Assembly (NCBI GenBank): GCA_000708835.1
Contig: DF237212.1
Span: 1 to 64,000 of the forward strand
Direction: 5' to 3'
Source of the DNA: Klebsormidium nitens
Taxonomy: Eukaryota > Plantae > Klebsormidiophyceae
DNA length: 64,000 bases
The notes under the pieces were generated by a model, which worked only from the letters and a program-made list of their open reading frames with translations, had not been told where the DNA came from and ran no database searches. Below are positions 1-45,200 of this stretch, one piece after another (position 1 is the first letter of the stretch; the number at the start of each line of letters is the position of its first letter). Both the position numbers and the translations under genes were made by a program.

Positions 1-418
1 GGAACTTGCATTCGAAAACAGCCTTTCTCTAATTCTCTGCTTATGGTTCCTCGAGCTCCTCAATTATGTCTAGATTGGCCATTCTAGCTTTCCTATCTTA
101 CACCAGGTAACCCTTACCGGTCTCAAAAAGGCCGGTCAAAAGCTCCCGGTGAGGGGTAGCTGGGATCCATCACCAGATTCTTGATCAGCAAAATTGAAGC
201 AATATGGCCCTCAGATGTTTCCAATTTCTGGTCTAGTTTTGACACCACAATTGGCTCCCTAGACTCTAGAGTCGCCAAGACGTTCACTGGCTCCAAATTC
301 GAGAGACAAAGCTGCCCCACCCTGCACAAAGCACAGGCTGCAGGGCGGCTGCAGGGCGGTTGATCATCAGGGCGTGGTGTGGCTGGACTACTTTCAGCAG
401 GTCTCTTGCAGCAGAGCC

Positions 419-3400
419 ATGGGGCCGCTTTCTGGGGCTCTCTCGGGGCACCTGAGAGGGCAGCTTGCTCTGATCAACCGTTCAAAGTCAAAGGATGCGT
501 GCAGTCTGCTCTATCGGAGCGTGTCCTCCTTCTGCGGCGATTCTGCCCCCACTGATGAGCAGGCTGATGAGGGCGTGGGTGGTTCGCGCCAGCCTTCAAT
601 CGAATCCAGTACAACAAACCTCGCAAGCACAAAAAGCGTGCAGCAGCGGCGCTCGCTTTTGGAGAAGCTGGCTTCTGACAGCACCTTTGTTGGAGCTTCA
701 GTTGCGAGCAGGCGCCAGCAGGTGCGGCGAAACAGCACCGCAAGCCCAGCAACAGCGCCCCAGAGCCCTCCCACCGTGCCGCCAAGCACGTCAACTGTGG
801 CCCCAACAGGCAGGGTGCCCGTCAAGCTGCACAGCATCATCCCTGATGAATTGAAGAAGGACATGATCGAGGTTTTCGTCGACGGGCAAGCAGTGAATCT
901 TCCCAAGGGCATGACAGTTCTGCAGGTACTTTCTCTACCGCCTATTGATCGGGTTAGATGTTCAGACGCATCACACAACTTGTGGCAGGCCACATCAAGG
1001 CTTTTGACTGGGGCTGAGGTTGAAGGATTCTTCCATCTCTTGTTCGTACAATTTCTTGTTATGCTGCCGCTAGCAGCACCTTTACCAAGTCTAGCAGCTC
1101 AACTTTTGTTGATCGAGGAAAATTACAGACACTTCTGCGCATACCATCCGCTGCCTGCTGTGCTGCAGGCTTGCGATGAGGCGGGCGTGGACATCCCAAG
1201 GTTCTGCTATCATCCGCGGCTGAGCATTGCTGGCAATTGCCGCATGTGCTTGGTGGAAGTGGAGAAGAGTCCGAAGCCGGTAGCATCGTGTGCCATGCCT
1301 GCAATGCCGGGGATGAAAATCAAGACAGACACACCGCTGGTACGTACTGAGGTCCTCTTTCTTTATCAATCGCACCCTCAATCATGAATAGCCAATCAAC
1401 CAACTCTGCTGCCGGAGCTCAGCATTTGCCTGATGAATTCCAAATCTCTGCAGCTCAATAAACCTGTCTATATGTGCTACATGGAAGATTTGCTGGTAAA
1501 GAGCTAAGGTGGGTTTAGATTGACAGAGAGCTAGTGGATTGGATTGAGGTGTTTGTAGCATCAAATTCAGATTAAACTTGAAACTTTGCAAAGCAGCCAA
1601 CCTTTTTCTCTGCTCTTTGCTGCGACTCAAAGTGATTGTAAATCCTCGTCTTGTCTGTTGCAGGTTAAGAAGGCGCGTGAAGGTGTAATGGAGTTTCTGT
1701 TGCTCAACCACCCTCTCGATTGCCCCATCTGCGATCAAGGTGGCGAGTGCGATCTGCAGGATCAGGCTATGGTGTTCGGCAGCGACAGGGGCCGTTTCAC
1801 CGACATGAAGAGGTCTGTTGTGGATAAGCATCTTGGACCTTTGATTAAGGTGAGTTTCTGCAGGGCAGCTATTTTTTGTTTGTTCCTCCATTGCTTGTAT
1901 ATTGACAGCATCCTCGAGTTGACAACTTGCTGCATGTGATGAAAGTGGTGGGAGTACTTTTGAGGAAACTTGCTGCAGGAGAAGCTAACAGTCCGGTTTG
2001 TCTGGTAACTTCCGTCGTTCCTGAAGGTGCCATATTCGCCATACCTGCGAATTCCGCTGCTCTGCTTATCGCGTTTCCAGCAGATGCCAGCCTCTTTTTG
2101 TCTGCGAGCTGCATGCAGTTGGACAAATCTGGAAGCAGATGCAGACCTGATCTTGGAAGCATATTTATGTTTTTGATCTGAAAGTGAATGAATGCACAGT
2201 TTCTCAACATCAGATGAATTCCTTGCAGACTGTCATGACGCGGTGCATCCACTGCACAAGGTGTGTGCGGTATGCCACCGAGATCGCCGGTGTGGAGGAT
2301 CTTGGGGTCCTGGGCCGCGGAAATGCTGAGGAGATTGGCACGTACGTGGATCGCCTTTCTACGAGCGAGGTATCAGGCAACGTCATCGACTTGTGCCCTG
2401 TGGGAGCCCTCACCAGCAAGCCTTACGCCTTCACCGCCAGGAACTGGGAGCTGGCAAACAAGGAGAGCATTGATGTTAGTGATGCGCTTGGGGCAAACAT
2501 CCGGGTGGACCACAGAGGACCTGAGGTATGCAAACGACTCTCTTTCAGACAGCCGAACTTCAAATTGGTGAAGGTTTCCTTGAAGATTACCAGTGCTTTT
2601 GCATGGGAACCAGCATCAAGTGCTTGCTGGACCTGGAGGTTGCTTTGTGTCTACTGCTTTTCCAAAAATGCTTGAAAGACAGGGCCCAACGGGTCTCCTT
2701 CTTCTGACAAGAAAACCATGATAAGCCACTGTTTGACTTCACATCTCTGGAATTGTTTTCTCATAAGGCTCCGCTGAGCCTCGACTTCACATTTCTGGAG
2801 GCTTTTCTCATAAGGCTCCGCTCAGACTCTCCCAAGTGATCCTCTGACTGGTAGTTCTTATCCTCTGAACCAATTCCCCGCTATCTGCAGGTGATGCGCG
2901 TCGTCCCGCGGCTGAACGAGGACGTCAACGAGGAGTGGCTCACTGACAAGGGTCGCTTCATGTATGACGGCCTCAAGCGGCAGCGCCTCGCCCTGCCCTA
3001 CGTGCGCGGCCCCGACGGCCGCCTCCAGCCCTCCGATTGGCAGGGGGCGCTTCAGGAGGCTGCGCGTGCTTTGACCTCCGTTCCAGGGGAAGAGATTGCC
3101 GCCGTTGTCGGGAAGCTAGCTGACGTGGAGTCCATCACTGCGCTCAAGGACTTCATGGCGCGGCTCAACTCCCAGCGGCTGTACATCGAGGGCGCCGAGG
3201 GCCAGGAGAACGCCGACATTCGGCCGAGCTACCTCTTCAACACGGGGATCGCCGCCCTCGAGGACGCGGACGCGGTGCTGCTCGTGGGGACGGACCTGCG
3301 CTCCGAGGCGCCCCTGCTCAACGTGCGCCTGCGCAAGGCCTTCCGCGCCGGCACGCTGCGCGACATTGCGGCGGTCGGGCCCGCGGACATGGACCTGACG

Positions 3401-4635
3401 TACCCGCACGAGCACCTCGGCGACAAGGCGCAGGACCTCTCCAAGCTGACCTCCGGGAAGGGCGGGTTCGCGGAGACCCTCGCCAAGGCAGAGCGCCCGG
3501 CGATCATCGTCGGCGCGGGCGTCCTGAGGCGGCCCGACAGGGACGCAATTCTGGGGGTGGTGGATCGGATTGCCAAGCAGGCGGGGGTGATCAAGGAGGA
3601 CTGGAATGGCCTCAATGTGCTGCAGCTGACGGCGAGCTCGACCGGCGCGCTGGACTTGGGCTTTGTGCCGGGGCCGGGGGTGAAGAAGGACGCGCCGCCG
3701 GCAAAGGTGGTGTACCTGCTGGGAGCGGACGAGGGGCTGAGCAAGTTCGTCGGGGAGGACAGTTTCGTGATTTACCAGGGGCACCACGGGGACCAGGGCG
3801 CGAGCAGGGCGAACGTGGTGCTCCCGGGCGCGGCCTACACCGAGAAGGAGGCGACGTACGTCAACACGGAGGGCCGGCCGCAGAGGACGATGGCGGCAGT
3901 TCCTGTGCCAGGTTAGTCCACCGACTGAGAATGTCCAAATTTCAGTGTCGGTTGGCAGAGGATAAGGGTGGCAGATTGTGATTAGGATTCAGCGTTGAAG
4001 GCCTCACAGACTGTGTTCTTCATTGATGTGATCAGCGAAGGTACTCAGACGGCCGTCGCATCTTCCTGCAACAGGTTGGCATGGTTCTTCCTGAGCAAGG
4101 GAAACGGTCCCCTATTCTGGAGGTGCAGTTGCAGGATTGAGATTTGCTGCTCATCGGACTTGATTCTTCACCATATGTAAGCCTCTGTGCAGAGCTAAAT
4201 TGTAAGCCTTTGTGCAAAGCTAAATATCGTAAACTTGGGACACCTGCAGGTAATGCGCGTGAGGACTGGAAGATCCTTCGTGCTCTGTCCGAGATCGCCG
4301 GAGTCCAGCTTCCATACGATACCACTGATGCCGTGCGGAGAAGGGCGGCCGAGATTGCCCCCCAGCTGGAGAGGCTCGAGGAGGTGGAAGTTTCCGAGGT
4401 CAGCATGGCAGCGCGCACGGCACCATCTAAGGCGTCCGCTGGACCCCTGCTGAAGGAGCCGTTTACGAGGGCTGTGCCAAACTTCTACATGACTGATCCC
4501 ATCAGCAGAGCCAGCCAGACCATGGCCAGATGTACGTCAATGTTCAAAAGCCAGAAGGAGGTGGACGCGCAGGAGGATTGGTTGTTGCACGCCGACTGGG
4601 GCAAGCAGAAGGCGGCGAAGCAACCAGCTCTTTAA
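419..4635 (+). CDS. NDUFS1: NADH:ubiquinone oxidoreductase 75-kDa Fe-S subunit (complex I), mitochondrial precursor; 6 exons
   Basis: Exons 419-925, 1169-1339, 1664-1849, 2229-2525, 2891-3911 and 4250-4635 join in frame at GT-AG junctions. Hallmark motifs: [91 protein letters not shown] and [12 protein letters not shown]. Confidence 0.98.
2735..2829 (+). repeat. Intronic tandem duplication, 2 x about 48 bp (GACTTCACAT..TTTTCTCATAAGGCTCCGCT)
   Basis: Two near-identical units start at 2735 and 2783 in NDUFS1 intron 4. Confidence 0.85.
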
Positions 4636-6018: not shown

Positions 6019-9000
6019 ATGTTGGCTTGGAGGGGAGGCTCCCGAAGAAAGATCAAAGAAGTGAGAACGGAAAGGATAACCTTTTGGTGTGCTTCTGCGA
6101 TGGTGAAATCAGCCTGATTGAAGTCATATCTGATCTCTCCTAGACAGAGCCTTGTACACAAGAATTGCCCCAGACTTGCCCTTATGTGAGACTCACAACT
6201 CATTGTTTCTTCTGCAGACGAAGCAATCTGTTCAAGGCAAGCAAAGACACTTCTTTGAACAGCGCAGACTGCTCAATAGGTCGGATGCTTCTGGTTCTGT
6301 CAGAAGGGCAGAAGACGCTGCTGCATCCTTCCCAGCAAAGCAGAGGAAAGGTGGGAGCCTGGACATCATAAGTCTGACGTCTCTATTAATTGTATCAAAG
6401 GCGAGCAAGAATGGCGACACGGTAGACGGGCAGCCTGTAGGAGCAGAAGCGTCCGGTCTTGGTGACAGCACTTTGAGACTGGGAACAAGAAGCAAGGAAT
6501 GGTCAACCCCGGGTGGTCAAGCGTCCAAGGTTCAGCCTCTAGAAAAGCCTCTGGAAGAGAAGGAAGGATCTCTTCAGAAGGATTACCACGGCTTATTGAG
6601 AGGTGAGAGACTTCTTGAGTTCTCCTCGATAGAAATGTTCAGGGAGCCTTTTGTCTATGAAATGTGCATGCTCAACTAACGATGCAACTTCTTGAGGGTA
6701 GTACAGAGGCCTAAAAGAGTCAAGGGTCTTTCGAAAACAGTAGCCTAGTATCAATTATTGCTGAATGGTTGTGGCTCTTGCAGGTTTGCAGTTGAGAAGA
6801 AGCAGACTGGGCGGAGAAGCTGAAGATGTGTCAGAAGGAAACGGGTGAGGTCCAAACTTAATGTATCCCAATCAAACTGACATTTCCTCTGACGTCGTCT
6901 CATCTGGACATAGCGATCCACATACGCAGAGGTTTAAACCACAAATTTTGATGATGCAGGTCCGCTCCTCCTGAAGTGGAAAAGAAAGAAGACCAGCATC
7001 AGAGGGTAAAGAAAGTAGCTTGCTCGAAGCTGAAGAAACCCAAAGGTGAACAACGAGCGAGCATCCAATCAAACAGGGGATTGCCATGGTTGAAGCAGAG
7101 TTCACTTGAAGTTCCCGGCTAATTTTACCCCTCTGGTCATTAGGATGCAAGCTATCGCCGTTGCTGATTGAATAATGAGATCCCGATTCCCCGTAAAACA
7201 GTTGACAGTGAGCTTCTTGAAATCCATATTATTCTGTCCCTTTCTACAGGATTTGATATCTTCGATGTTATCGACGAGCAGGAGGACAGAGGTGGTGCCC
7301 GGAATTCGGCACGGCAAGAGAGTTATGCAGCTTTTGCTGTTCAAGGAACAGGAGAGATAGCCGAAGGCTCTCCGCCGTCTACGCCGCCCGCAAATCTGAG
7401 ACAAAGCCCTAATAACAAAGAGTAAGAATCCATTTTTGAAGACCGACGAATGTCTGTTCATTTTGATCTTTATCTACTACGAAGAATCGTTCGTTGAAAT
7501 CGCAACTTTCACGTAATTGAGCGATCTGTGCCATAACAATCAACTTTACGAACGATAACTTCCTTTGCAGTTTCCATGATTTACCTCGATCTTTAAAGGA
7601 TCGAAATGCAACGAGCCGATCAGAAGAAGAGCGTCATGAACAGCGAGTCAAGTCAAATCATCAGCGCAGACCGTTTCAGACGCTTCAACCAGAGGAGTTC
7701 CCGCGAACTCCTAAGAGCGTTTCATTCATTGCAACCGGTCACCAGTCGCCTTCTCAACAAACGCAGGTGATTCATTTCTTTCAAAATCGTTGAACGGGTT
7801 GGTGCACGAGGTCTATTGCAACCCTTTTCAGATCTCTTTAGTTTTGTCGAGAGTACTGAATCCGGACTTATTACGTGGAGCAAACTCAAAGTCCTGGGAT
7901 TGCTATTATTGGCAATCAGCAAACCGAGAGGGTCATATTCGTTTCTACAAACGAATCCTCGTATCCGAGGACGATTACGTGACCACTCCGATTGAAACAA
8001 ATTGGGACTGATTTGTATTCCATTTATTGCAGTTTCTCGACGGGATGCATGAGAACAAGGCTCGCAGACAGCGGGAGGCTTCGCGGTTGGAAAATCTCCA
8101 GAGAGTCTCCGAAGTTTCCGATTTCGAAGATACGGTTACTGAGCCAGAGCTTCAGCCTCTTGATTTTCTGCGTGCAAAAGAAGACGGCAGATTTGACTTA
8201 GAAGCAAGGCCTTCAAGCTGCGAGCTCGAAAACCATTTCTCTCTTTCACCCCCGGAAACTGAGGGAAATCTCTTTTTCTCTCCTTTTGGGATCGAGGAAG
8301 AACGAGGAGAAGGAGTAGCATCAAGGCACGAGTTTGACTTTTTCTCTGAAAGCTTTCCAGTCAGCGAGAGGAAAGACGAGTCTCCATTCCAAACCCAAGG
8401 CTTCCGTTTCCTGTCAACAGTGGATTCCCCAATTCAACAACGTAGTAACAGGAGCACTTTGGATAAGAGCGGCTTCTTTTCCCTGCACGACCAGATTGAC
8501 GACTTCGACAACCAGACACACTCAGTACCAGATGCTAATCCGTTCTTCTCCGAAGATCAGGATGTCTTCGATAGCCATTCTGGTCGTAGACCACTTGCAA
8601 AATCGAGTATAGACGGCAGGGAAGAAAAGGAAGCATTTTCTGAGCACGAGTTTTCCTCCGAATCTCTCTTTCAGCGATCTTGGACGGGTGATCTGGGACT
8701 CGCCCCTGGTGCTCGATCAGAGGTTGACTGGCAAAACGGGGTCGCATTTTGCAGCGAAAGGGCTCGAGTAAGCTTCCACATCACATCCAGATTTGCTTGT
8801 CTTGTATCTCCAATCTTTCCACCACATCTAAGTCAAGCTTGCGGAGCAGATGGCATTGCAAACTTTGATGGGAGTCTACTTCATCAATCATTAGTAAGCT
8901 TCGCGCCTGCTTGACCATGTGACGGTGTCTTGCAGGAAGAAACGACAAACGATACGTTGACGACGAGAATTCTCGTTTTTGTTGATTTCAGCATTCCAGA

Positions 9001-12000
9001 CTTCCTTCCGTCTCGAAGAGCAGAATCCAACCGGTTCCAGGAATTCCTGCAAGGAGTCCCGTCAAAGCCTGAATCGACAGAGTTTTACCCTGCTTTGCGA
9101 GAACAAGATTCTCAAGATAGCCCAAGCAAAGAATTCTCCGGCAGCGAAGTGTTGAGAGGGCTCGCAACTGAGTCTCTGGAAGAAGAGGAAGGACACCCGT
9201 TTGGGGAGACCAATCTTGAAGATGTCCTCCATCGTCAATCTTCCGAGCGGTTCTCACCTGCAAGGGTTGCCGAAGAAAGGTATGCAGATGGGTGAGTTCC
9301 TATTTTAGACCGTCATCAAGGAAACGGAATACTGATCTGCTGCAGGAAAGTGAGCGACAAAGTTTATGAATTAGTCATGCACGTAGGAAACTGACAGGAA
9401 ATGAGACAATAATCTTCGGATTCTTAATGACCGCGCACGATGCTCTTCTGCAGCTTTCTTCCCCTCACGAGTCCCTTTGGTCCGCAAGAACGTCGGCTGG
9501 ACGAATTCTTCTCAGCACAGACAGTTCCTGCAGCTGGTAAGTGCTGAACACAATCATCTTATAAGGGCAGCCTCAGTATTATAGAAGCATTGTGGGCAGC
9601 TGCAGGACAGCTTGCCTCTAGCCAAGTTGTATGATAGCAGTCAATGGAGGACTGCTTGACTTCCATGCTGGCAAGAAAGCAAATAGCTCTTGGCGGTTCT
9701 TCAAAACAACTGGGCAACTGAGCTTTGCATCTTTGTACGGCTTGGTCAGCTTGTCGTGCACCTTACGGCTCTTCCAGGTGACATATTGCTCCCTCTGTTC
9801 GCGTATCAGGTGCGCATTCGTTCTACGACCAGGTAATCCGAAGCAGACATGAGACTAGGATTGCATTCGAATAAGGCTGTCCAGATTGTGTGAGATATTC
9901 ATTCTTTCTGCAGGCGATGAGGTCGATCAAAGCCCGCCATCAGCCCCTCCTGCCCAGGACAAGAAAGATGCCGACGTCGCCAAGCTCGACCTTGGCGTCA
10001 GTCTGGAGGTCGACCTAGCTGCAGATTTCAATGCTGAGAGGACGGCAGGACCAGAGGCGGGCTTTGAGCCCTTGTTTCCTTCAATTTCGTCGCCAATTAC
10101 TAGGACTGTCGACACTCCGGGTGCAAGGCAGCAAGAGATCGACTTTTTCCATGTGGGGCCTGCCAGTGAGCTTGCGTTCATGGAGCAAGGCACGAAAGAA
10201 GGTGGTGTTCTATCGCACCAAGATTGTGACCTCTTTCCGAAGCCTTCTTCGGGACTCGGAAAACGCCTATTTGCTGATCTCGACATCGACCTGGAGGAGA
10301 GTGCTCCAGCTCTTGACTCTGACACCAAGCGTCATGACTTCAGACGTGCCAGCCCAAAGATGAAGCTAGATTTTCTCGACACTGTAGGCTGCGAGAAAGT
10401 TGCTGAGGGTGAAGAAAATGTCGGCTGGAGAGAAGCTGAAGCCCAACCTGAGACTTCCCCGGTGGGCAAGCAGTCAGGTCTGAAACGGCTGAACATACCC
10501 AGAAGTAACTTTGCAGCATTTGAAGAGCAGGAGGTAACCGAGCTACAGCAAGGTGATGAGATTGCAAGAGGAAGCTCTTTAGAAAGGAGGGGCAGTTGCT
10601 CCGCTTCTCCAGCCAGATCGCCAATAAATGGCAAAGAGGAGCTCCAAACCATTCCGCAGGTAGAGGCACCGAGCCTGCAATATAGGGAACCTCCAAACGC
10701 CTTTTTCTCCGACTTCCCAGCGCGGCACGAAACCGAAGGCAGCGAGCATCTCTTGTTTGGTGATAGCGAGCAGAAGCTCAGAAGCACGGATGAGATTCTG
10801 AAGCGCTTGGTACCCAAACGCGTGCTGGAGGAGGGAGAGGATGTGCCGCCAAAGCGACCTCGAAGAACTCTCAAAGAGGCAACGTTCTGTCTTGACTTGA
10901 ATGCAGCTTTCACTTGCGAAACCTCTTTCTTCGAGACCGAGGACTTTGGAGGCAAGAAGGGGCCGGCAGCCTCTTTGAGCAGTGAACCTGCAGAGTCCGC
11001 CGCTGCGGCTCAACACGATGCGGCGAAAGTTCCGCTCCCGCGAGGGACAGGCGCTGATGGCGGCCCCAAAGGAAGCGGCGGCGAACGCTTCGAAGATGCT
11101 CTGCCTGATTGGGCTGGTGCGTGCGAAGAGGCGGCGCCTCCTCAGGCGCCTCCTCAGCACGAGCATGTCGAGCAGTCCGTCGAAATAGAGTCAGGAGCAC
11201 AACGGCCGAAGCGCCCGCCCTCTGCACCGTCAGCCGCATCGAGCTCTCAGGGACAAGATTTAGACGAAGCAAGCTTGCAGGAGAAACCCCCAAAGGAAAG
11301 AGAGAAGCTTCTCTGCAGCGTCCCGACTCAACCGGAGGCTGCCGACGAGACGAACTTGGCAAAAGCGAAGGCGGTTCGCGCGGACATGGAGAAAGACCAG
11401 ACGGCAGAGATGGCAGAGGCGGCCGCGGTGATTGCAGAGGAGGATGGAAGCGGGGGCAAAAGTGACAGGAGCGCTGCTAAGAGCATAAGTGTACTCAAAA
11501 CGGGGACGAAGAAGCTTGGTCTGCCCTCGAGGAGCCCTCCATTCGACGGCAAGCCGAGTCAGGCGGAAGCGTCTCCTGTAAGAACGACCGCAGAAGGTCC
11601 TCTCGGAAACCAGGAGAAGAAACAGGAGGATCGAGCGCCCTGCAAAGAGTGCTCGCCGGAGCCAGAGAGAGCGATCGAGAGTGAGAGTGGAACGGGCAAC
11701 AAATATGGAGAGGGGCGAGAAGGGAGAGAAGAAGTCGAGGAGGAAGGATACGAAGATAACGCGCAGGCGAGGGGGGAGGACGGGCCAGCGCAGAAAACGG
11801 AAGGGGCCAGAGGTGACCTCGGCGTGGATCGTGGTCGGGGTTCGAGTCGAGCGTCAATTGAAGCAGGGAGAGGAGCCGACGAACAGGAGTGCCGAGTTTG
11901 CAGTAGAGTGGGGAAGCAGTCAGCGGCCGAAGAAACGCCAAGGGAGCAGCTTCGAGAGCGGGGCGACACCTCTTCGAGGGAGGAAGAGGCTGCTGACAGT

Positions 12001-12484
12001 GGCGAGGACGTCACTGTGACGGCGGCGAAGGCGCTGTGTCTGCTCAAGTAAGTAAGGTAAACAAGGGGTGTGAGGAATCCAATTCAATGCACTGTTCTAT
12101 ACCTCTGGTAGGTGGTATGTGAGACCTTTTCCAAGCCCTGATGGGGTCTCTCAAAGGACTGATACTGTTTGACCTTAAAAGTCAAACAACCTACTTTGAA
12201 TGAATTTTACCGGTCACCTTTACGCTCACCATACTAACTCTCATGCTTCTCTGCAATGTTGGCATGCTTTTCAACAAGAACATCATGAAGGCTCTTGGTT
12301 AGGCAAGCTGCATTCTGACAAGCGGAAAACTTGCAGGAGTGAGATGGTTGACGAGGAGGTCGTGCAGGGAGAGAACGGCTTTCCTTCCGGCGGAGGAAAT
12401 TTTGAGGAGGATCTCGTCAACTTCGAGGATGGGTCGATCTTGCAGCAAGGAATGGACGATTGGAAAATTAGACCCGAGCCTTGA
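6019..12484 (+). CDS. HEIP1: HEIP1/REDIC1 (C12orf40)-like meiotic class I crossover factor; very large, mostly disordered, about 12 exons
   Basis: Exon 6019-6060 (MLAWRGGSRRKIKE) joins exon 6218-6602 (TKQSVQGKQRHFFEQRRL...SLDIISL). This matches the recalled family N-terminus (plant MLQWMGGSRRKV..RQKQYFEQR..SLDILNL; human MNWVGGSRSRV..KQKEYFEK..SLDLLNL). Exon 7250-7421 (FDIFDVIDE..ESYAAFAVQGTGEIAEGSPPSTP) matches the second plant motif (SVFDLVGD..EAHMAFSVEGLGK..ETPVNSP). Further in-phase exons: 6784-6844, 6960-7045, 7571-7766, 8033-8767, 8936-9291, 9454-9536, 9914-12047 and 12337-12484. Structure between 7767 and 8032 is uncertain. Confidence 0.8.
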
Positions 12485-19044: not shown

Positions 19045-21122
19045 ATGGCCGACCAGAACGTGTGGTACAGGATCCCGCCCACTCCACGTGTCATCCTTCC
19101 CGCTGTCGCGGCCGCGTTCACGGTGGGGGGGCTCTTCTTCCATCTTGTGAGGAACAAGAAGATCTTCGGGGGTAAGTCATGGCGGATCCTCCGTACAGCC
19201 GCTATTTTCATTATGTATTACTTGAGCCTCTCTTTGAAGCCCGTCCTTTTAGGTGCTCTTGCTGTTCCAACTTTTGGCCGAATTTCGCAAGGGAACGTCT
19301 CGAAAGCTTCTGACAGAGTAAGAAATGTCTGCAAGTTTTGCTTCCATGCATCCGTGCCGTATGAATGCTTGGTGCGTTCATTGAGCTTCGGAAACATCAA
19401 ATGACATCGATGGGTGCACCATAAGATGAGTAAGTTGGAAGAGGGACTTTAGAGTAGCACATGCGGACTTATGAGACCTGCATCTCAGCTGACCGTTAGG
19501 GACTATCTTTGTTTCGTCGTGATTATCCACCACTGAATTCTTTGGGAGCGGGCGCTCTTACTGCTTTCCAAAAGGCGATGCTGATGGACTCGGCTTTGGC
19601 CGTTATGGTCAAAGGAGCCGAGTGCCTCGTAGCCACTTGATTTCTTTGCCCAGACTTTTGGATATCATTACGGAATTGCTTTCATAGCTCGAGTACGGAG
19701 TCTGTAAGCCTGGTGGCCGCTCCGTAAGTAACTTCGAATCCTTCAGACAATCACCACAGGCATATTGTGGTGGCGCCGAATTTCTCCCCGCTTCGTTGTT
19801 CTGCAGCTTTTGAGTCTCAAACTCTGCTTGTGGAAAAGCTAGGGCGGACGAGTTGTGCACTCCCTGCTCACTTAAAATCCAGCTTTCGAGACATCTAGTC
19901 GGTCTGTGCGCTTGTGGCCCGTCTGATCTCGTGATTCATGGATATGCTGATGAAACCAACGCGTCTTCACTTGAAAACTAACGAGACACGCCGCATGAGT
20001 GATTCGGAGAAAGATAAGGTGCTCTCAAAAAGAGAGGAGGCTTGTGCATGGTGAGGTTAGCCTCTTGACGCTGAGATGAACGACACTCCTGAAGCGACAG
20101 CCCGACTAACAGAGTACTTGCTCTGAAAGACTTTCAGCTCAGCCACACCAAAGAGGCAAAGAAAGGTCAGTAACTTTTGGTTGGCCTCTCTCACTAACAC
20201 GTTGCCCCGTCAGGTTGTGTCCAAAACATCTGGACGAAAGGCTATAAGGCCCAACGATGGCAGGAGGCAGTCTGTTCAAGTGATTTTCCGCCATGCAGGC
20301 TCGATTCCGCGGACGCTGACGCCGGAATGGGAGGACGCAACGGACCTGAAAATGCACGCGTGGCCCCGGGAGGCGAGCGAGCACCCGGTGGCAATCAACC
20401 CCATCCGGCGGGAAAACTTCTACGTCAGAGTGAGCATGCAAAAGCGTTTTGGCGAAGTCAGAGCGTTGCAGGCAGCAGAACATGTGCCTCTGCTTGAAAG
20501 TCGGAGGCCGGAGTGGGCGTCTGCAAGTGCGTGTCGCTCTTGGGGTGCGGCTGGCTTGCCCGGAGCGTTCCGTACTTTGGCATTGTGTGAAATTTTTGTA
20601 AGGGTGCGCGTCGACTCAAAATCTGCAAAAAGCTTTCCAGATTTCTTAGCCAATCGGATGGCTTTTCAGATCCACGTGGTAGCCCAAGGTACATACCAGA
20701 AGAGTAATATGGCCTGAAAAGTACCATACCTCCTACCTGTCGGTACTACAAAGGCAACACTGGAGGCCAAGTAGGTTTTCGGTCGATACGCAACCTAACC
20801 TTAATCTCGTACCTATGCACAAGTAAATGCTCTGACTTTGGAAAAATGCACCCGCTCAAGAGATAGGCCGGAAAGCTATGATGGTCACGCATGCGCCTTT
20901 ATAAGGAGAGGAGAGCATTGTGAGCCTGACCGTATACTCAGCTTCCCGGTTGTAATGAGAGATGACGTCGACTCGCAGAGTGGCCGTACACGAGTGCGTT
21001 TAAAGACTGCGGATTCAAACGCTGGTTACGATTCACCCTAATTCTCTTGCATGCAGACGGACAACCGGTATGAAGAACACGAGATCAGGAGAAGCATCGG
21101 AAAAAAGGCTGAGAAGCTTTGA
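19045..21122 (+). CDS. AtOZI1/DUF1138 family small membrane protein (plant cytochrome c oxidase subunit 4-like); 3 exons
   Basis: Exons 19045-19171, 20299-20429 and 21057-21122 give MADQNVWYRIPPTPRVILPAVAAAFTVGGLFFHLVRNKKIFGGSIPRTLTPEWEDATDLKMHAWPREASEHPVAINPIRRENFYVRTDNRYEEHEIRRSIGKKAEKL. One TM helix is followed by KIFGG-x-x-P-x-T..EW..ATD.K..AWPR..PV.(M/I)NPI.R.NF, as in AtOZI1. The third exon is less certain. Confidence 0.85.
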
Positions 21123-42238: not shown

Positions 42239-45200
42239 TCATCGTCGGAACGTGGACATCCTGTTCCCCGACCGTGGGAATGCCTGGCTCCTCTTGCCTG
42301 CCTTGATCCCCGCCCCCTCCTCCTCCATTGACGCAAATGGGTTGAAGTTGTGACCCGGCTCTTCCTTCGGTGCCCCGTAGCTTTGCTCCTCCGGTTTTGA
42401 CCCGCGACTCTGCTTTACTGGCTTTGCCCCTTTGCCGCCCTCTTTCGTCCCAGCCGCTGGCTTACTCTTTAGAAACGAGCGCAGCCCGAGCGCCCCCGCC
42501 GCCGCCGCGAAATCGAACTTCCCGTCCTTAGCCAGCCCTTCGCAGCCCGCTTCGAGCGCCGCAGCGCTCGGCCCAGCGGGGAGCGCCCTTTTCCCCCCAT
42601 GTTGTGACCCACTCTGTCCATTCTCGTTCCCTTCACCTACGCCCCCAGAAACGCTCTTCTGCTCTTTTTCCGCTCCCGACGTTTCTGGACCCTGCGCCTT
42701 CTTCCCGTTGCCCGCTTCCCGACCACCGCTTCCGTTTGCAGCTTGTGCGAAAGCGCCCGTCTTTCGGTAAGCTTGCGAGATGGGCTTCGGAAGGTCCTGC
42801 GTGCCAAACAGCGCCAGCTTTTCCGCTTCCGGGTCCGGTTTCCGTTCCGCCTCCTCCTCCCCGCCGTTCGATTGCTCTTCCTCGTCCTCTTCTCCATCCT
42901 TATACATCATCACTTCCTCCAAAGGCACTGCCCCGCTCTCCTCTGTTCCTTCTTCATTCCCTGCCTCGCCCTCATGTAGCGCTTCGGAGCGGCTTCCTTC
43001 TCCCGTAATCTTTACGAAATTCAACCCTTGGGTGGGCCCCAAACCCCCCACAGGCGTGAACGGCAGAGCGAGCGACGCTTTCACTCGCTCTGCCGCCGCC
43101 TTTGCGCTCGTCTCCTCGCTTCCCCCCCGGCTAGATCTGGCCCCAAACATGGCCCCCAGGCCGCCCTTGCGCTTCTTTTGCTTCAAACCCGGTTCCGCGA
43201 ACCCAAGTTTTCCGTTGTCCGTCGACTCAGCCGTCGGAACGCCGCTGCTCCGGCCACTTTCCGCTCTCTCGCCTTCCGCAGCCCCAGCCGTAGCTGCAGC
43301 ACTACTCTGGAACGCTTCAGACCCGTCCGCAGTTTCTCCTCGAACGGTCTTATCGCGGACGTCCGCATTCACTGTCTCTGGTTCCATTCGCTCCGTCGAC
43401 GGCCCAGCGCCCTCCTCTGCCATCTCTTCTCTCACACCGCAGATTTCTCGTACCACCGCTGCTTTCCCCTCGCTCCCTTTCGCCACGTTCGCTCGCTTTG
43501 CCGGCCGCCCAAAGAGCGCGGACCCAGCAGCCCTCTTGACCACCACCGCTTTCCGTGTCGTTGCTTCCAGGCCGCCACGTGGCGCGCCAGGAGCGGCTTC
43601 CGGCTGCTCTTCTTCTTCTTCAGAACCCATGTCGTCCTCCACGCTCAAAAGAGAAGGCCCCACCGCACTCTTTCTCGGGTCACCCAATGCCGACTGCCCG
43701 ATCGCTCTCTTGATACCCAAACCCTCGACAGCCCCTTGCCCCTCTTTCGGACTTTTCGGACTCTCCGGCCTGCGCCNNNNNNNNNNNNNNNNNNNNNNNN
43801 NNNNNNNNNNNNNNNNNNNNNNNNNNNNNNNNNNNNNNNNNNNNNNNNNNNNNNNNNNNNNNNNNNNNNNNNNNNNNNNNNNNNNNNNNNNNNNNNNNNN
43901 NNNNNNNNNNNNNNNNNNNNNNNNNNNNNNNNNNNNNNNNNNNNNNNNNNNNNNNNNNNNNNNNNNNNNNNNNNNNNNNNNNNNNNNNNNNNNNNNNNNN
44001 NNNNNNNNNNNNNNNNNNNNNNNNNNNNNNNNNNNNNNNNNNNNNNNNNNNNNNNNNNNNNNNNNNNNNNNNNNNNNNNNNNNNNNNNNNNNNNNNNNNN
44101 NNNNNNNNNNNNNNNNNNNNNNNNNNNNNNNNNNNNNNNNNNNNNNNNNNNNNNNNNNNNNNNNNNNNNNNNNNNNNNNNNNNNNNNNNNNNNNNNNNNN
44201 NNNNNNNNCGCGAGCGCCTCCAGCAAGTCCGAGCTGCCCTCGTCCTCTGACGTCAGGAAGTCCGAGATGACGTCAGCGCCCTCCCAGAGCGCCGGGTCGA
44301 ACGCCGCGCCCCCCGCGCCGCTCGCCTGCTCGCGCGCGGCGCGCAGCACCTCGATGACGTCAGCGGCGCGCGCGGTGACGACGGGGCTCTGCCCGCGGAC
44401 GATGCTCTGGAGCTTGCGGGCGTCCGACGGGAGCTCCTCCGCAAGACGGAGCAGCAGGTGCTTTGGGAGAATGTAGCCGCAGCTCTCGTCTTGCTCCCTG
44501 CATAAATGCGGGGCGGGCCAATAGTTGAGGCGAGGCTTACTTAGCGCCTGATGTCCCTTGCCCCAAAAACAACCAAGGTGATCCTCTATGCCACCCTTCA
44601 AAAGATGAAGTTCGACCGTTGAAAGCCCTTGAAATTCTTAGAGTACGACACTCAGAAACGAATCTGCGTAAACAAGTGCGAGGCACAACGGTGTTGACAG
44701 AATCACCTCGGCGCAAAAGGGAACGGCATGCGACGAACGTGATTATCATGGCAGTACCGGTTAAAATCATGTTTACAATGACCTACACGTGTTCCAAAAA
44801 GCGCCGGTGAGAAGAAGCAATATCTTGATTGCCGCCTGACCTGGCTGTTCGGTCGCGCCAGGCATAGAGCCCGGCCAGTGCCGCGAGCTGCTGCTTGTTC
44901 AGGTGGCGCCCGTAGTTCTTGTACAGCTTCAAGTACGACGTCTCGCGGAACAGCTCCTTCTCGTAAACAGCCAGGCACAGGTCGCGGCTGCGGTCCAACA
45001 CCTGCGCGCAGGGGTTTCAGTGACGGGGCGGGAAAACAAAGTGGCGGTTCTTGGCCTGATTACAATTGTGTTGGTTGCAAGGGTTCATGGACGCAGAGAA
45101 CCGTCTATTGAGAAGGCCTTTTGAGAAGGTCTCTGATTGCAGCTGTGTTTCCAATCTGTGCGAGAGCTTGGCGGATCCATGCAGCGCAAAATGTTGCAGG

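Follow-up and report, generated by a model that had tools for sequence, protein, structure and literature searches.

A HEIP1-family gene in the streptophyte alga Klebsormidium nitens: a signature split by an intron and a proposed eleven-exon gene model

The first 64,000 nucleotides of Klebsormidium nitens contig DF237212.1 (the window) raise the question of whether a gene that begins at position 6019 encodes HEIP1, a meiotic crossover protein, in a genus for which, to our knowledge, sexual reproduction has not been documented. Our analysis indicates that it does: with a probability of roughly 0.88, KFL_002630020 (kfl00263_0020) is the probably single K. nitens orthologue of HEIP1, known in human as C12orf40/REDIC1, with a putative role as a scaffold for class I crossovers. 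This identity is already known, as the gene is annotated and its assignment has been in print since 2023; the sole new point offered here is a correction of the gene model. The questions that follow are how the gene is built, how much of it is held by selection, and what it suggests about meiosis in this alga.

The split signature and its place in the public record

Exon 1 (6019–6060; like every feature described here, on the forward strand) is only 42 nt long, starts with the ATG at 6019 and comprises 14 codons, MLAWRGGSRRKIKE, in which the N-terminal signature of HEIP1 begins (W-x-GGSRRK, its first half). It is followed by a phase-0 intron of 157 nt (6061–6217) with GT..AG ends, the donor being GTGAGA at 6061 and the acceptor ttctgcAG with its last base at 6217. 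Exon 2 (6218–6602, 385 nt) contains the second half of the signature, KQRHFFEQRRL together with GGSLDIISLTSL; read from 6218 it gives TKQSVQGKQRHFFEQRRLL...GGSLDIISLTSL, a frame also rendered as TKQSVQGKQRHFFEQRRLLN...GGSLDIISLTSL, and it includes SLDIISL. The sequence-only reading of this DNA had proposed both the 42-nt exon spliced to KQRHFFEQRRL..SLDIISL and the division of the signature by an intron; the sites and frame can be read directly, and the signature, carried by the first 75 or so residues, is indeed interrupted after codon 14. Translation continued through intron 1 meets a stop at 6115–6117, and because neither the intron of K. nitens (157 nt) nor that of the relative L002 (167 nt) has a length divisible by three, splicing is needed to hold exons 1 and 2 in frame.

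Two relatives were used for comparison, namely L002 (a Logan assembly of SRR23617307) and L003/L004 (JGI metagenomes 3300060284 and 3300060285). In both relatives a complex I gene lies upstream of HEIP1, making the loci syntenic. The DNA of exon 1 is 100% identical to that of L002, compared with 64% for the 5' flank and 65% for intron 1, in which the indels are not multiples of three. Against L003, 13 of the 14 residues encoded by exon 1 are identical, with a dN/dS of 0.06 at a dS of 0.8, and on these alignments the conservation of the exon in L002 and L003 is far above chance expectation. GT/AG ends are retained in the homologous introns of L002 (167 nt) and L003 (216 nt), and the 6060/6218 junction is consequently supported by splice sites kept in two relatives as well as by the public gene model.

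That model bears on the earlier description of the gene as hidden. An exhaustive search of proteins, with exon 2 as the query, yielded at 100% identity a K. nitens protein of 1,118 aa (P0001), encoded at 6019–12484 of DF237212.1, in which residues 1–14 correspond to exon 1 and are joined straight to exon 2. Residues 14 and 15 of P0001 read E|T, giving the same 6060/6218 junction and the same ATG at 6019. The locus is annotated on the plus strand of assembly GCA_000708835.1, at DF237212.1 6019–12484, as KFL_002630020, a hypothetical protein, and its sequence matches the beginning of the window exactly. Exon 1 is absent only from a prokaryote-style list of open reading frames and is present in the public annotation; with its start codon, its first junction and a published HEIP1 assignment (PMC9957857) all on record, the gene cannot be called hidden.

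The assignment itself comes from Thangavel et al. 2023 (PMC9957857), who searched for meiotic proteins across plant lineages with PSI-BLAST and HMMER, placed the origin of HEIP1 in Streptophyta and, in their supplementary file 2, gave kfl00263_0020_v1.1 as the K. nitens entry under HEIP1. The upstream neighbor of our gene is that of the 75-kDa complex I subunit, which makes HEIP1 the second gene on scaffold 263 and fits the identifier kfl00263_0020. KFL_002630020 and kfl00263_0020_v1.1 are the same locus, sharing the start codon at 6019, the junction between exons 1 and 2 and the stop at 12484.

A proposed eleven-exon model

The sequence-only reading had placed the gene at 6019–7421. These coordinates are correct for the first five exons, but the gene most likely has 11 exons and ends at 12484. 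Our model follows the reading frame between canonical GT-AG splice sites and totals 4,386 nt and 1,461 aa; it differs from the public model of 1,118 aa and is favored by conservation in L002 and L003. When the DNA is aligned with L002, each exon is 76–100% identical and 22 of 22 exon indels are multiples of three, whereas introns and flanks are 51–70% identical and carry mostly non-triplet indels. GT/AG pairs stand at homologous L002 positions in 10 of 10 cases, and exon lengths are kept modulo 3.

The first disagreement with P0001 concerns exons 3 and 4, both of which are skipped by its join of 6602 to 7250. Exon 3 (6784–6844, 61 nt) has canonical splice sites and the same length in L002, to which it is 79% identical in DNA without indels between flanking introns of 59–64% identity; its 17 codons give a dN/dS near 1 against L002, and a counterpart was not found in L003. 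Exon 4 (6960–7045, 86 nt) shows 79% amino acid identity to L002 with a dN/dS of 0.28. A shorter version of this exon, using an alternative donor at 7005, was rejected because exon 5 would then contain a stop codon. Exon 5 (7250–7421, 172 nt) is the later exon with ESYAAFAVQGTG that had been predicted from the DNA, and it is present as described: it reads FDIFDVIDEQ...ESYAAFAVQGTGEIAEGSPPSTPP, a block conserved in plant HEIP1, with an amino acid identity of 82% to L002 (dN/dS 0.30) and 69% to L003 (dN/dS 0.10).

Downstream of exon 5, P0001 joins 7421 to 8675; exon 6 is thereby lost along with the greater part of exon 7, and 8675–8767 is read in another frame. Exon 6 (7571–7766, 196 nt) is 57% identical to L002 at the amino acid level (E=4e-20), with one 3-nt indel. 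Exon 7 (8033–8767, 735 nt), of which the public model uses only 8675–8767, lies inside an open frame of 295 codons, with long open reading frames of 276 and 325 codons occupying its place in L002 and L003; its amino acid identity to L002 is 61% over 245 aa (E=8e-94), and all indels are multiples of three. For exon 8 (8936–9279, 344 nt), whose donor and acceptor stand at homologous L002 positions and whose amino acid identity is 59% to L002 and 29% to L003, the public model has 8992–9291 instead.

The two models come together again at exon 9 (9454–9536, 83 nt), which is in the public model too. Exon 10 (9914–12047, 2,134 nt) encodes a long stretch, acidic and of low complexity, that is probably disordered, with 63% amino acid identity to L002 and 32% to L003, and all ten of its indels are multiples of three. 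Exon 11 (12337–12484, 148 nt; 63% amino acid identity to L002, dN/dS 0.27) ends in ...MDDWKIRPEP, with the TGA stop at 12482–12484 matching the annotated gene end. Taken as a whole, the comparison suggests that some 340 residues are most likely missing from the public protein. Conserved exons are among the missing parts, a point of consequence for alignments of a family as hard to align as HEIP1.

Constraint is distributed unevenly along the protein. Against L002, exons 2, 4, and 5 keep 78–82% protein identity with dN/dS values of 0.20–0.30 (78% and 0.20 for exon 2), while the exons other than 1, 2, 4, and 5 keep 57–69% with dN/dS mostly between 0.3 and 0.8, the range for exons 6–8 and 10 being 0.5–0.8. 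In the more distant L003, at a dS of about 1.9, exons 7, 8, and 10 keep only 26–32% identity. Overall dN/dS is 0.45 against L002 and 0.32 against L003. By these estimates the motif exons are under strong purifying selection across three Klebsormidiophyceae genomes (dN/dS 0.06–0.3), whereas the remainder of the protein is fast-evolving and seemingly disordered. The expectation of an intact gene is borne out by this selection and by the frame and splice sites conserved in relatives, and the earlier proposal to measure dN/dS in the motif blocks can be answered with 0.20–0.30 against L002 (exons 2, 4, and 5) and with 0.06 and 0.10 against L003 (exons 1 and 5).

Likeness to Arabidopsis HEIP1 and the wider searches

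The sequence of Arabidopsis HEIP1 (AT2G30480, UniProt F4INT5) was taken from its printed form in PMC9957857, and four short conserved blocks were compared by tblastn with all six frames of the 64-kb window. For residues 1–17 the best match in the window is at 6019–6069 (E=0.002), for residues 18–32 at 6227–6268 (E=0.021), and for the VFDLVGDD...AFSVEGLGK...SP block at 7258–7386, in exon 5 (E=1.4e-4); the SLDILNL block has its top match, a tied one, at 6344–6385 (E=0.61). The four top matches are collinear and on one strand. Their chain scores 92.3 bits, compared with 58.8 ± 2.3 (maximum 67.4) for 200 residue-shuffled block sets, giving z = 14.8, a result that is clear even though the block boundaries were picked after the similarity had been seen, which makes the shuffle p-value optimistic.

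Side by side, Arabidopsis MLQWMGGSRRKV corresponds to MLAWRGGSRRKI in K. nitens, KQKQYFEQRR to GKQRHFFEQRR, QSLDILNL to GSLDIISL, VFDLVGDD to IFDVIDEQ, and HMAFSVEGLGK..SP to YAAFAVQGTGE..SP. Beyond the blocks, similarity between the two proteins is undetectable, and the comparison is one of short blocks, not of full-length proteins. The conserved patch of the first ~70–75 residues is present from the N-terminus of the K. nitens protein (Arabidopsis blocks, 6019–6385). A further plant-conserved motif within the first ~250 residues, a region to which Li et al. 2018, as cited in PMC10265981, assign four plant motifs, is present in exon 5, which at a dN/dS of 0.10 we counted as the most constrained exon against L003, beside the 0.06 of the short exon 1. 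The four collinear blocks and the published assignment (PMC9957857) together uphold the view that this is the HEIP1-family gene of an early-branching streptophyte.

Searches of broader databases were less informative. Pfam, run at E values up to 10 on P0001 and on exons 2, 5, 7, and 10 plus part of exon 6, reported no family, and the GCK domain attributed to rice HEIP1 in PMC9957857 was likewise not detected in P0001 and these exons. An exhaustive phmmer search with exon 2 recovered no named HEIP1 or C12orf40, its matches being the gene itself, the two relatives, and three spurious entries. Genomes typically carry a single HEIP1 gene, and the phmmer matches comprised one K. nitens protein (P0001) and one protein per relative. 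Word-index searches, with residues 1–200 of P0001, with a family alignment, and with residues 1–75 at E values up to 10, found only the Klebsormidiophyceae relatives and spurious repeat proteins; the published work relied on PSI-BLAST/HMMER or HHblits profiles. Among the three spurious phmmer entries, P0003 (2,397 aa) was rejected as a homologue: it consists of 17 tandem repeats, each scoring about 25 bits, with 26% identity to a stretch outside the motifs, and its E-value is inflated by their repetition. P0005 and P0006 were set aside for low-identity matches spread over multiple stretches, P0006 being visibly repetitive.

There was no usable match among ESM Atlas look-alikes, and a PDB sequence search gave only chance antibody matches. 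An AlphaFold2 model of residues 1–210 has a mean pLDDT of 48 and is mostly low-confidence coil, with helices only at 19–35, covering the KQRHFFEQRRL block, and at 64–67. Built on a shallow alignment, the model is weak evidence, consistent with HEIP1.

Probable meiotic role and comparison with known systems

HEIP1 promotes class I crossovers in rice, Arabidopsis, and mouse, and it binds HEI10 (PMC10265981; bioRxiv 10.1101/2025.08.25.672081). Reported contacts extend to ZIP4/TEX11 and MSH5, and the protein acts in both the designation and the maturation of crossover sites (same sources); in mouse, residues 1–226 of HEIP1 bind residues 81–276 of HEI10 (bioRxiv 10.1101/2025.08.25.672081). By analogy with these three species, K. 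nitens HEIP1 would act in the class I (ZMM) crossover pathway as a scaffold that is for the most part disordered. In this model its conserved N-terminal part would bind the E3 ligase HEI10, it may also contact ZIP4/TEX11 and MSH5, and it would help to designate recombination sites and then to mature them into MLH1-MLH3-dependent crossovers. As precisely the portion conserved for the HEI10, ZIP4, and MSH5 contacts is retained in K. nitens, the same scaffold function during meiosis in Klebsormidium is most likely.

Whether the gene also implies cryptic meiosis, as the sequence-only reading had argued, is a separate matter. The partners HEI10 (kfl00078_0120), MSH4, MSH5, SHOC1, and MLH3, which that reading had proposed to look for, have been published for K. 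nitens (PMC9957857, supplementary file 2), where the same row also lists MER3, MLH1, DMC1, HOP2, MND1, REC8, and others. Meiosis that has escaped notice would be compatible with an intact, constrained HEIP1 and this published ZMM set, and the earlier argument was in that respect reasonable, but one gene is no proof and the meiotic-toolkit argument for this alga is not new. That Klebsormidium retains meiosis with interference-type (class I) crossovers, given an intact, constrained HEIP1 in three genomes and the reported ZMM set, is a tentative reading, to which we would give slightly less than even odds. Purifying selection on the motif exons in three Klebsormidiophyceae genomes adds to the evidence that functional crossover machinery has been retained in these seemingly asexual algae.

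A different possibility is that the gene is a true HEIP1 descendant that is no longer meiotic in Klebsormidium, having taken on a role in somatic DNA repair or elsewhere, or decaying slowly in an asexual lineage. We know of no documented sexual reproduction in the genus, which would suit this explanation, as would the fast evolution of most of the protein (dN/dS 0.5–0.8 in exons 6–8 and 10). We nevertheless consider it unlikely, as the 1,461 codons form an unbroken frame, every exon indel is a multiple of three and every splice site is conserved, and the motif exons hold dN/dS at 0.06–0.3 in three genomes over distances of up to about dS 1.9. Moreover, HEI10, MSH4, MSH5, MER3, SHOC1, MLH1, and MLH3 are listed for K. 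nitens (PMC9957857), and the HEIP1 literature cited here (PMC9957857, PMC10265981, bioRxiv 10.1101/2025.08.25.672081) mentions no non-meiotic role. Less probable still is an unrelated, lineage-specific disordered protein with short N-terminal motifs that resemble HEIP1 by chance, which would account for the want of a Pfam or database search linking the protein to a named HEIP1 and for a likeness to Arabidopsis limited to short blocks, but not for four collinear blocks, the first of which opens both the K. nitens and the Arabidopsis protein at residue 1 (chain z = 14.8 when shuffled blocks are run across the entire window), for their coincidence with the most constrained parts of the gene, or for the choice of this same gene as HEIP1 by an independent PSI-BLAST/HMMER study (PMC9957857).

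A meiotic HEIP1 orthologue remains the reading that we prefer, and it can be set against the family in plants and animals. According to PMC9957857 rice HEIP1 has a GCK domain, which Pfam does not detect in P0001 or the exons scanned; PMC10265981 does not count GCK among the defining traits of the family and locates the conserved region N-terminally. What HEIP1 has in common with human C12orf40 is confined to the first ~70 residues, the remainder being predicted to lack structure (Singh et al. 2023, PMC10265981), so that the likeness of plant HEIP1 to human and mouse C12orf40/REDIC1/HEIP1 is limited to this stretch, and K. nitens carries the plant form. Arabidopsis, rice, and K. nitens all have the signature from residue 1, with ML-x-W-x-GGSRRK, KQ-x-x-FEQRR, and SLDI-x-x-L in the same order, followed later by the FD..D / AF-x-V-x-G-x-G...SP block and then by a long, apparently unstructured remainder. 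The AlphaFold2 and Pfam results agree with the account of HEIP1 in PMC10265981, in which a short conserved patch at the N-terminus precedes an unstructured rest, and the K. nitens protein, with its short constrained N-terminal motifs and fast-evolving, probably disordered body, matches the pattern published for HEIP1.

The public protein model of HEIP1

The public protein model of the HEIP1 gene KFL_002630020 (window 6019-12484, plus strand; 1,118 aa) leaves out, or places in a different frame, exons 3, 4 and 6 (6784-6844, 6960-7045 and 7571-7766) and most of exon 7 (8033-8767). Coding conservation of these same stretches is seen in two relatives and, because the skipped or misframed exons are conserved as coding sequence there, the model appears on sequence comparison to be incomplete. 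In the more distant of the Klebsormidiophyceae relatives, represented by a JGI metagenome locus (L003), intron 1 is 216 nt long, a multiple of three, and free of stops; a prokaryotic gene caller therefore ran on from exon 1 through the intron into exon 2 and called a single protein of 219 aa (P0004, L003 10001-10660).

Gene order upstream of HEIP1

Directly upstream of HEIP1 lies a gene for the complex I 75-kDa subunit (NDUFS1 type; window 374-4635). It adjoins HEIP1 on this side in all three Klebsormidiophyceae loci, being found at 1-1663 in the syntenic locus of the second relative (L002) and at 4787-8261 in L003, and the gene order is therefore conserved. In L003, a gene for a second complex I subunit, of the NDUFB11 family, sits just upstream of the 75-kDa subunit gene on the opposite strand.

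Other genes of the window

An assembly gap, a run of 432 N (43777-44208), falls within a minus-strand gene region whose upstream exons carry a 3'-5' exonuclease domain (PF01612, 46826-47725). Judged by eye, the ORFs adjoining the gap resemble a protein of the RRP6/HRDC type, and the long ORFs overlapping on both strands around it are in part artefacts of the N run. A small gene at 19045-21122, with an annotated product of 107 aa, encodes a DUF1138 protein (PF06592), a family that to our knowledge is restricted to plants.
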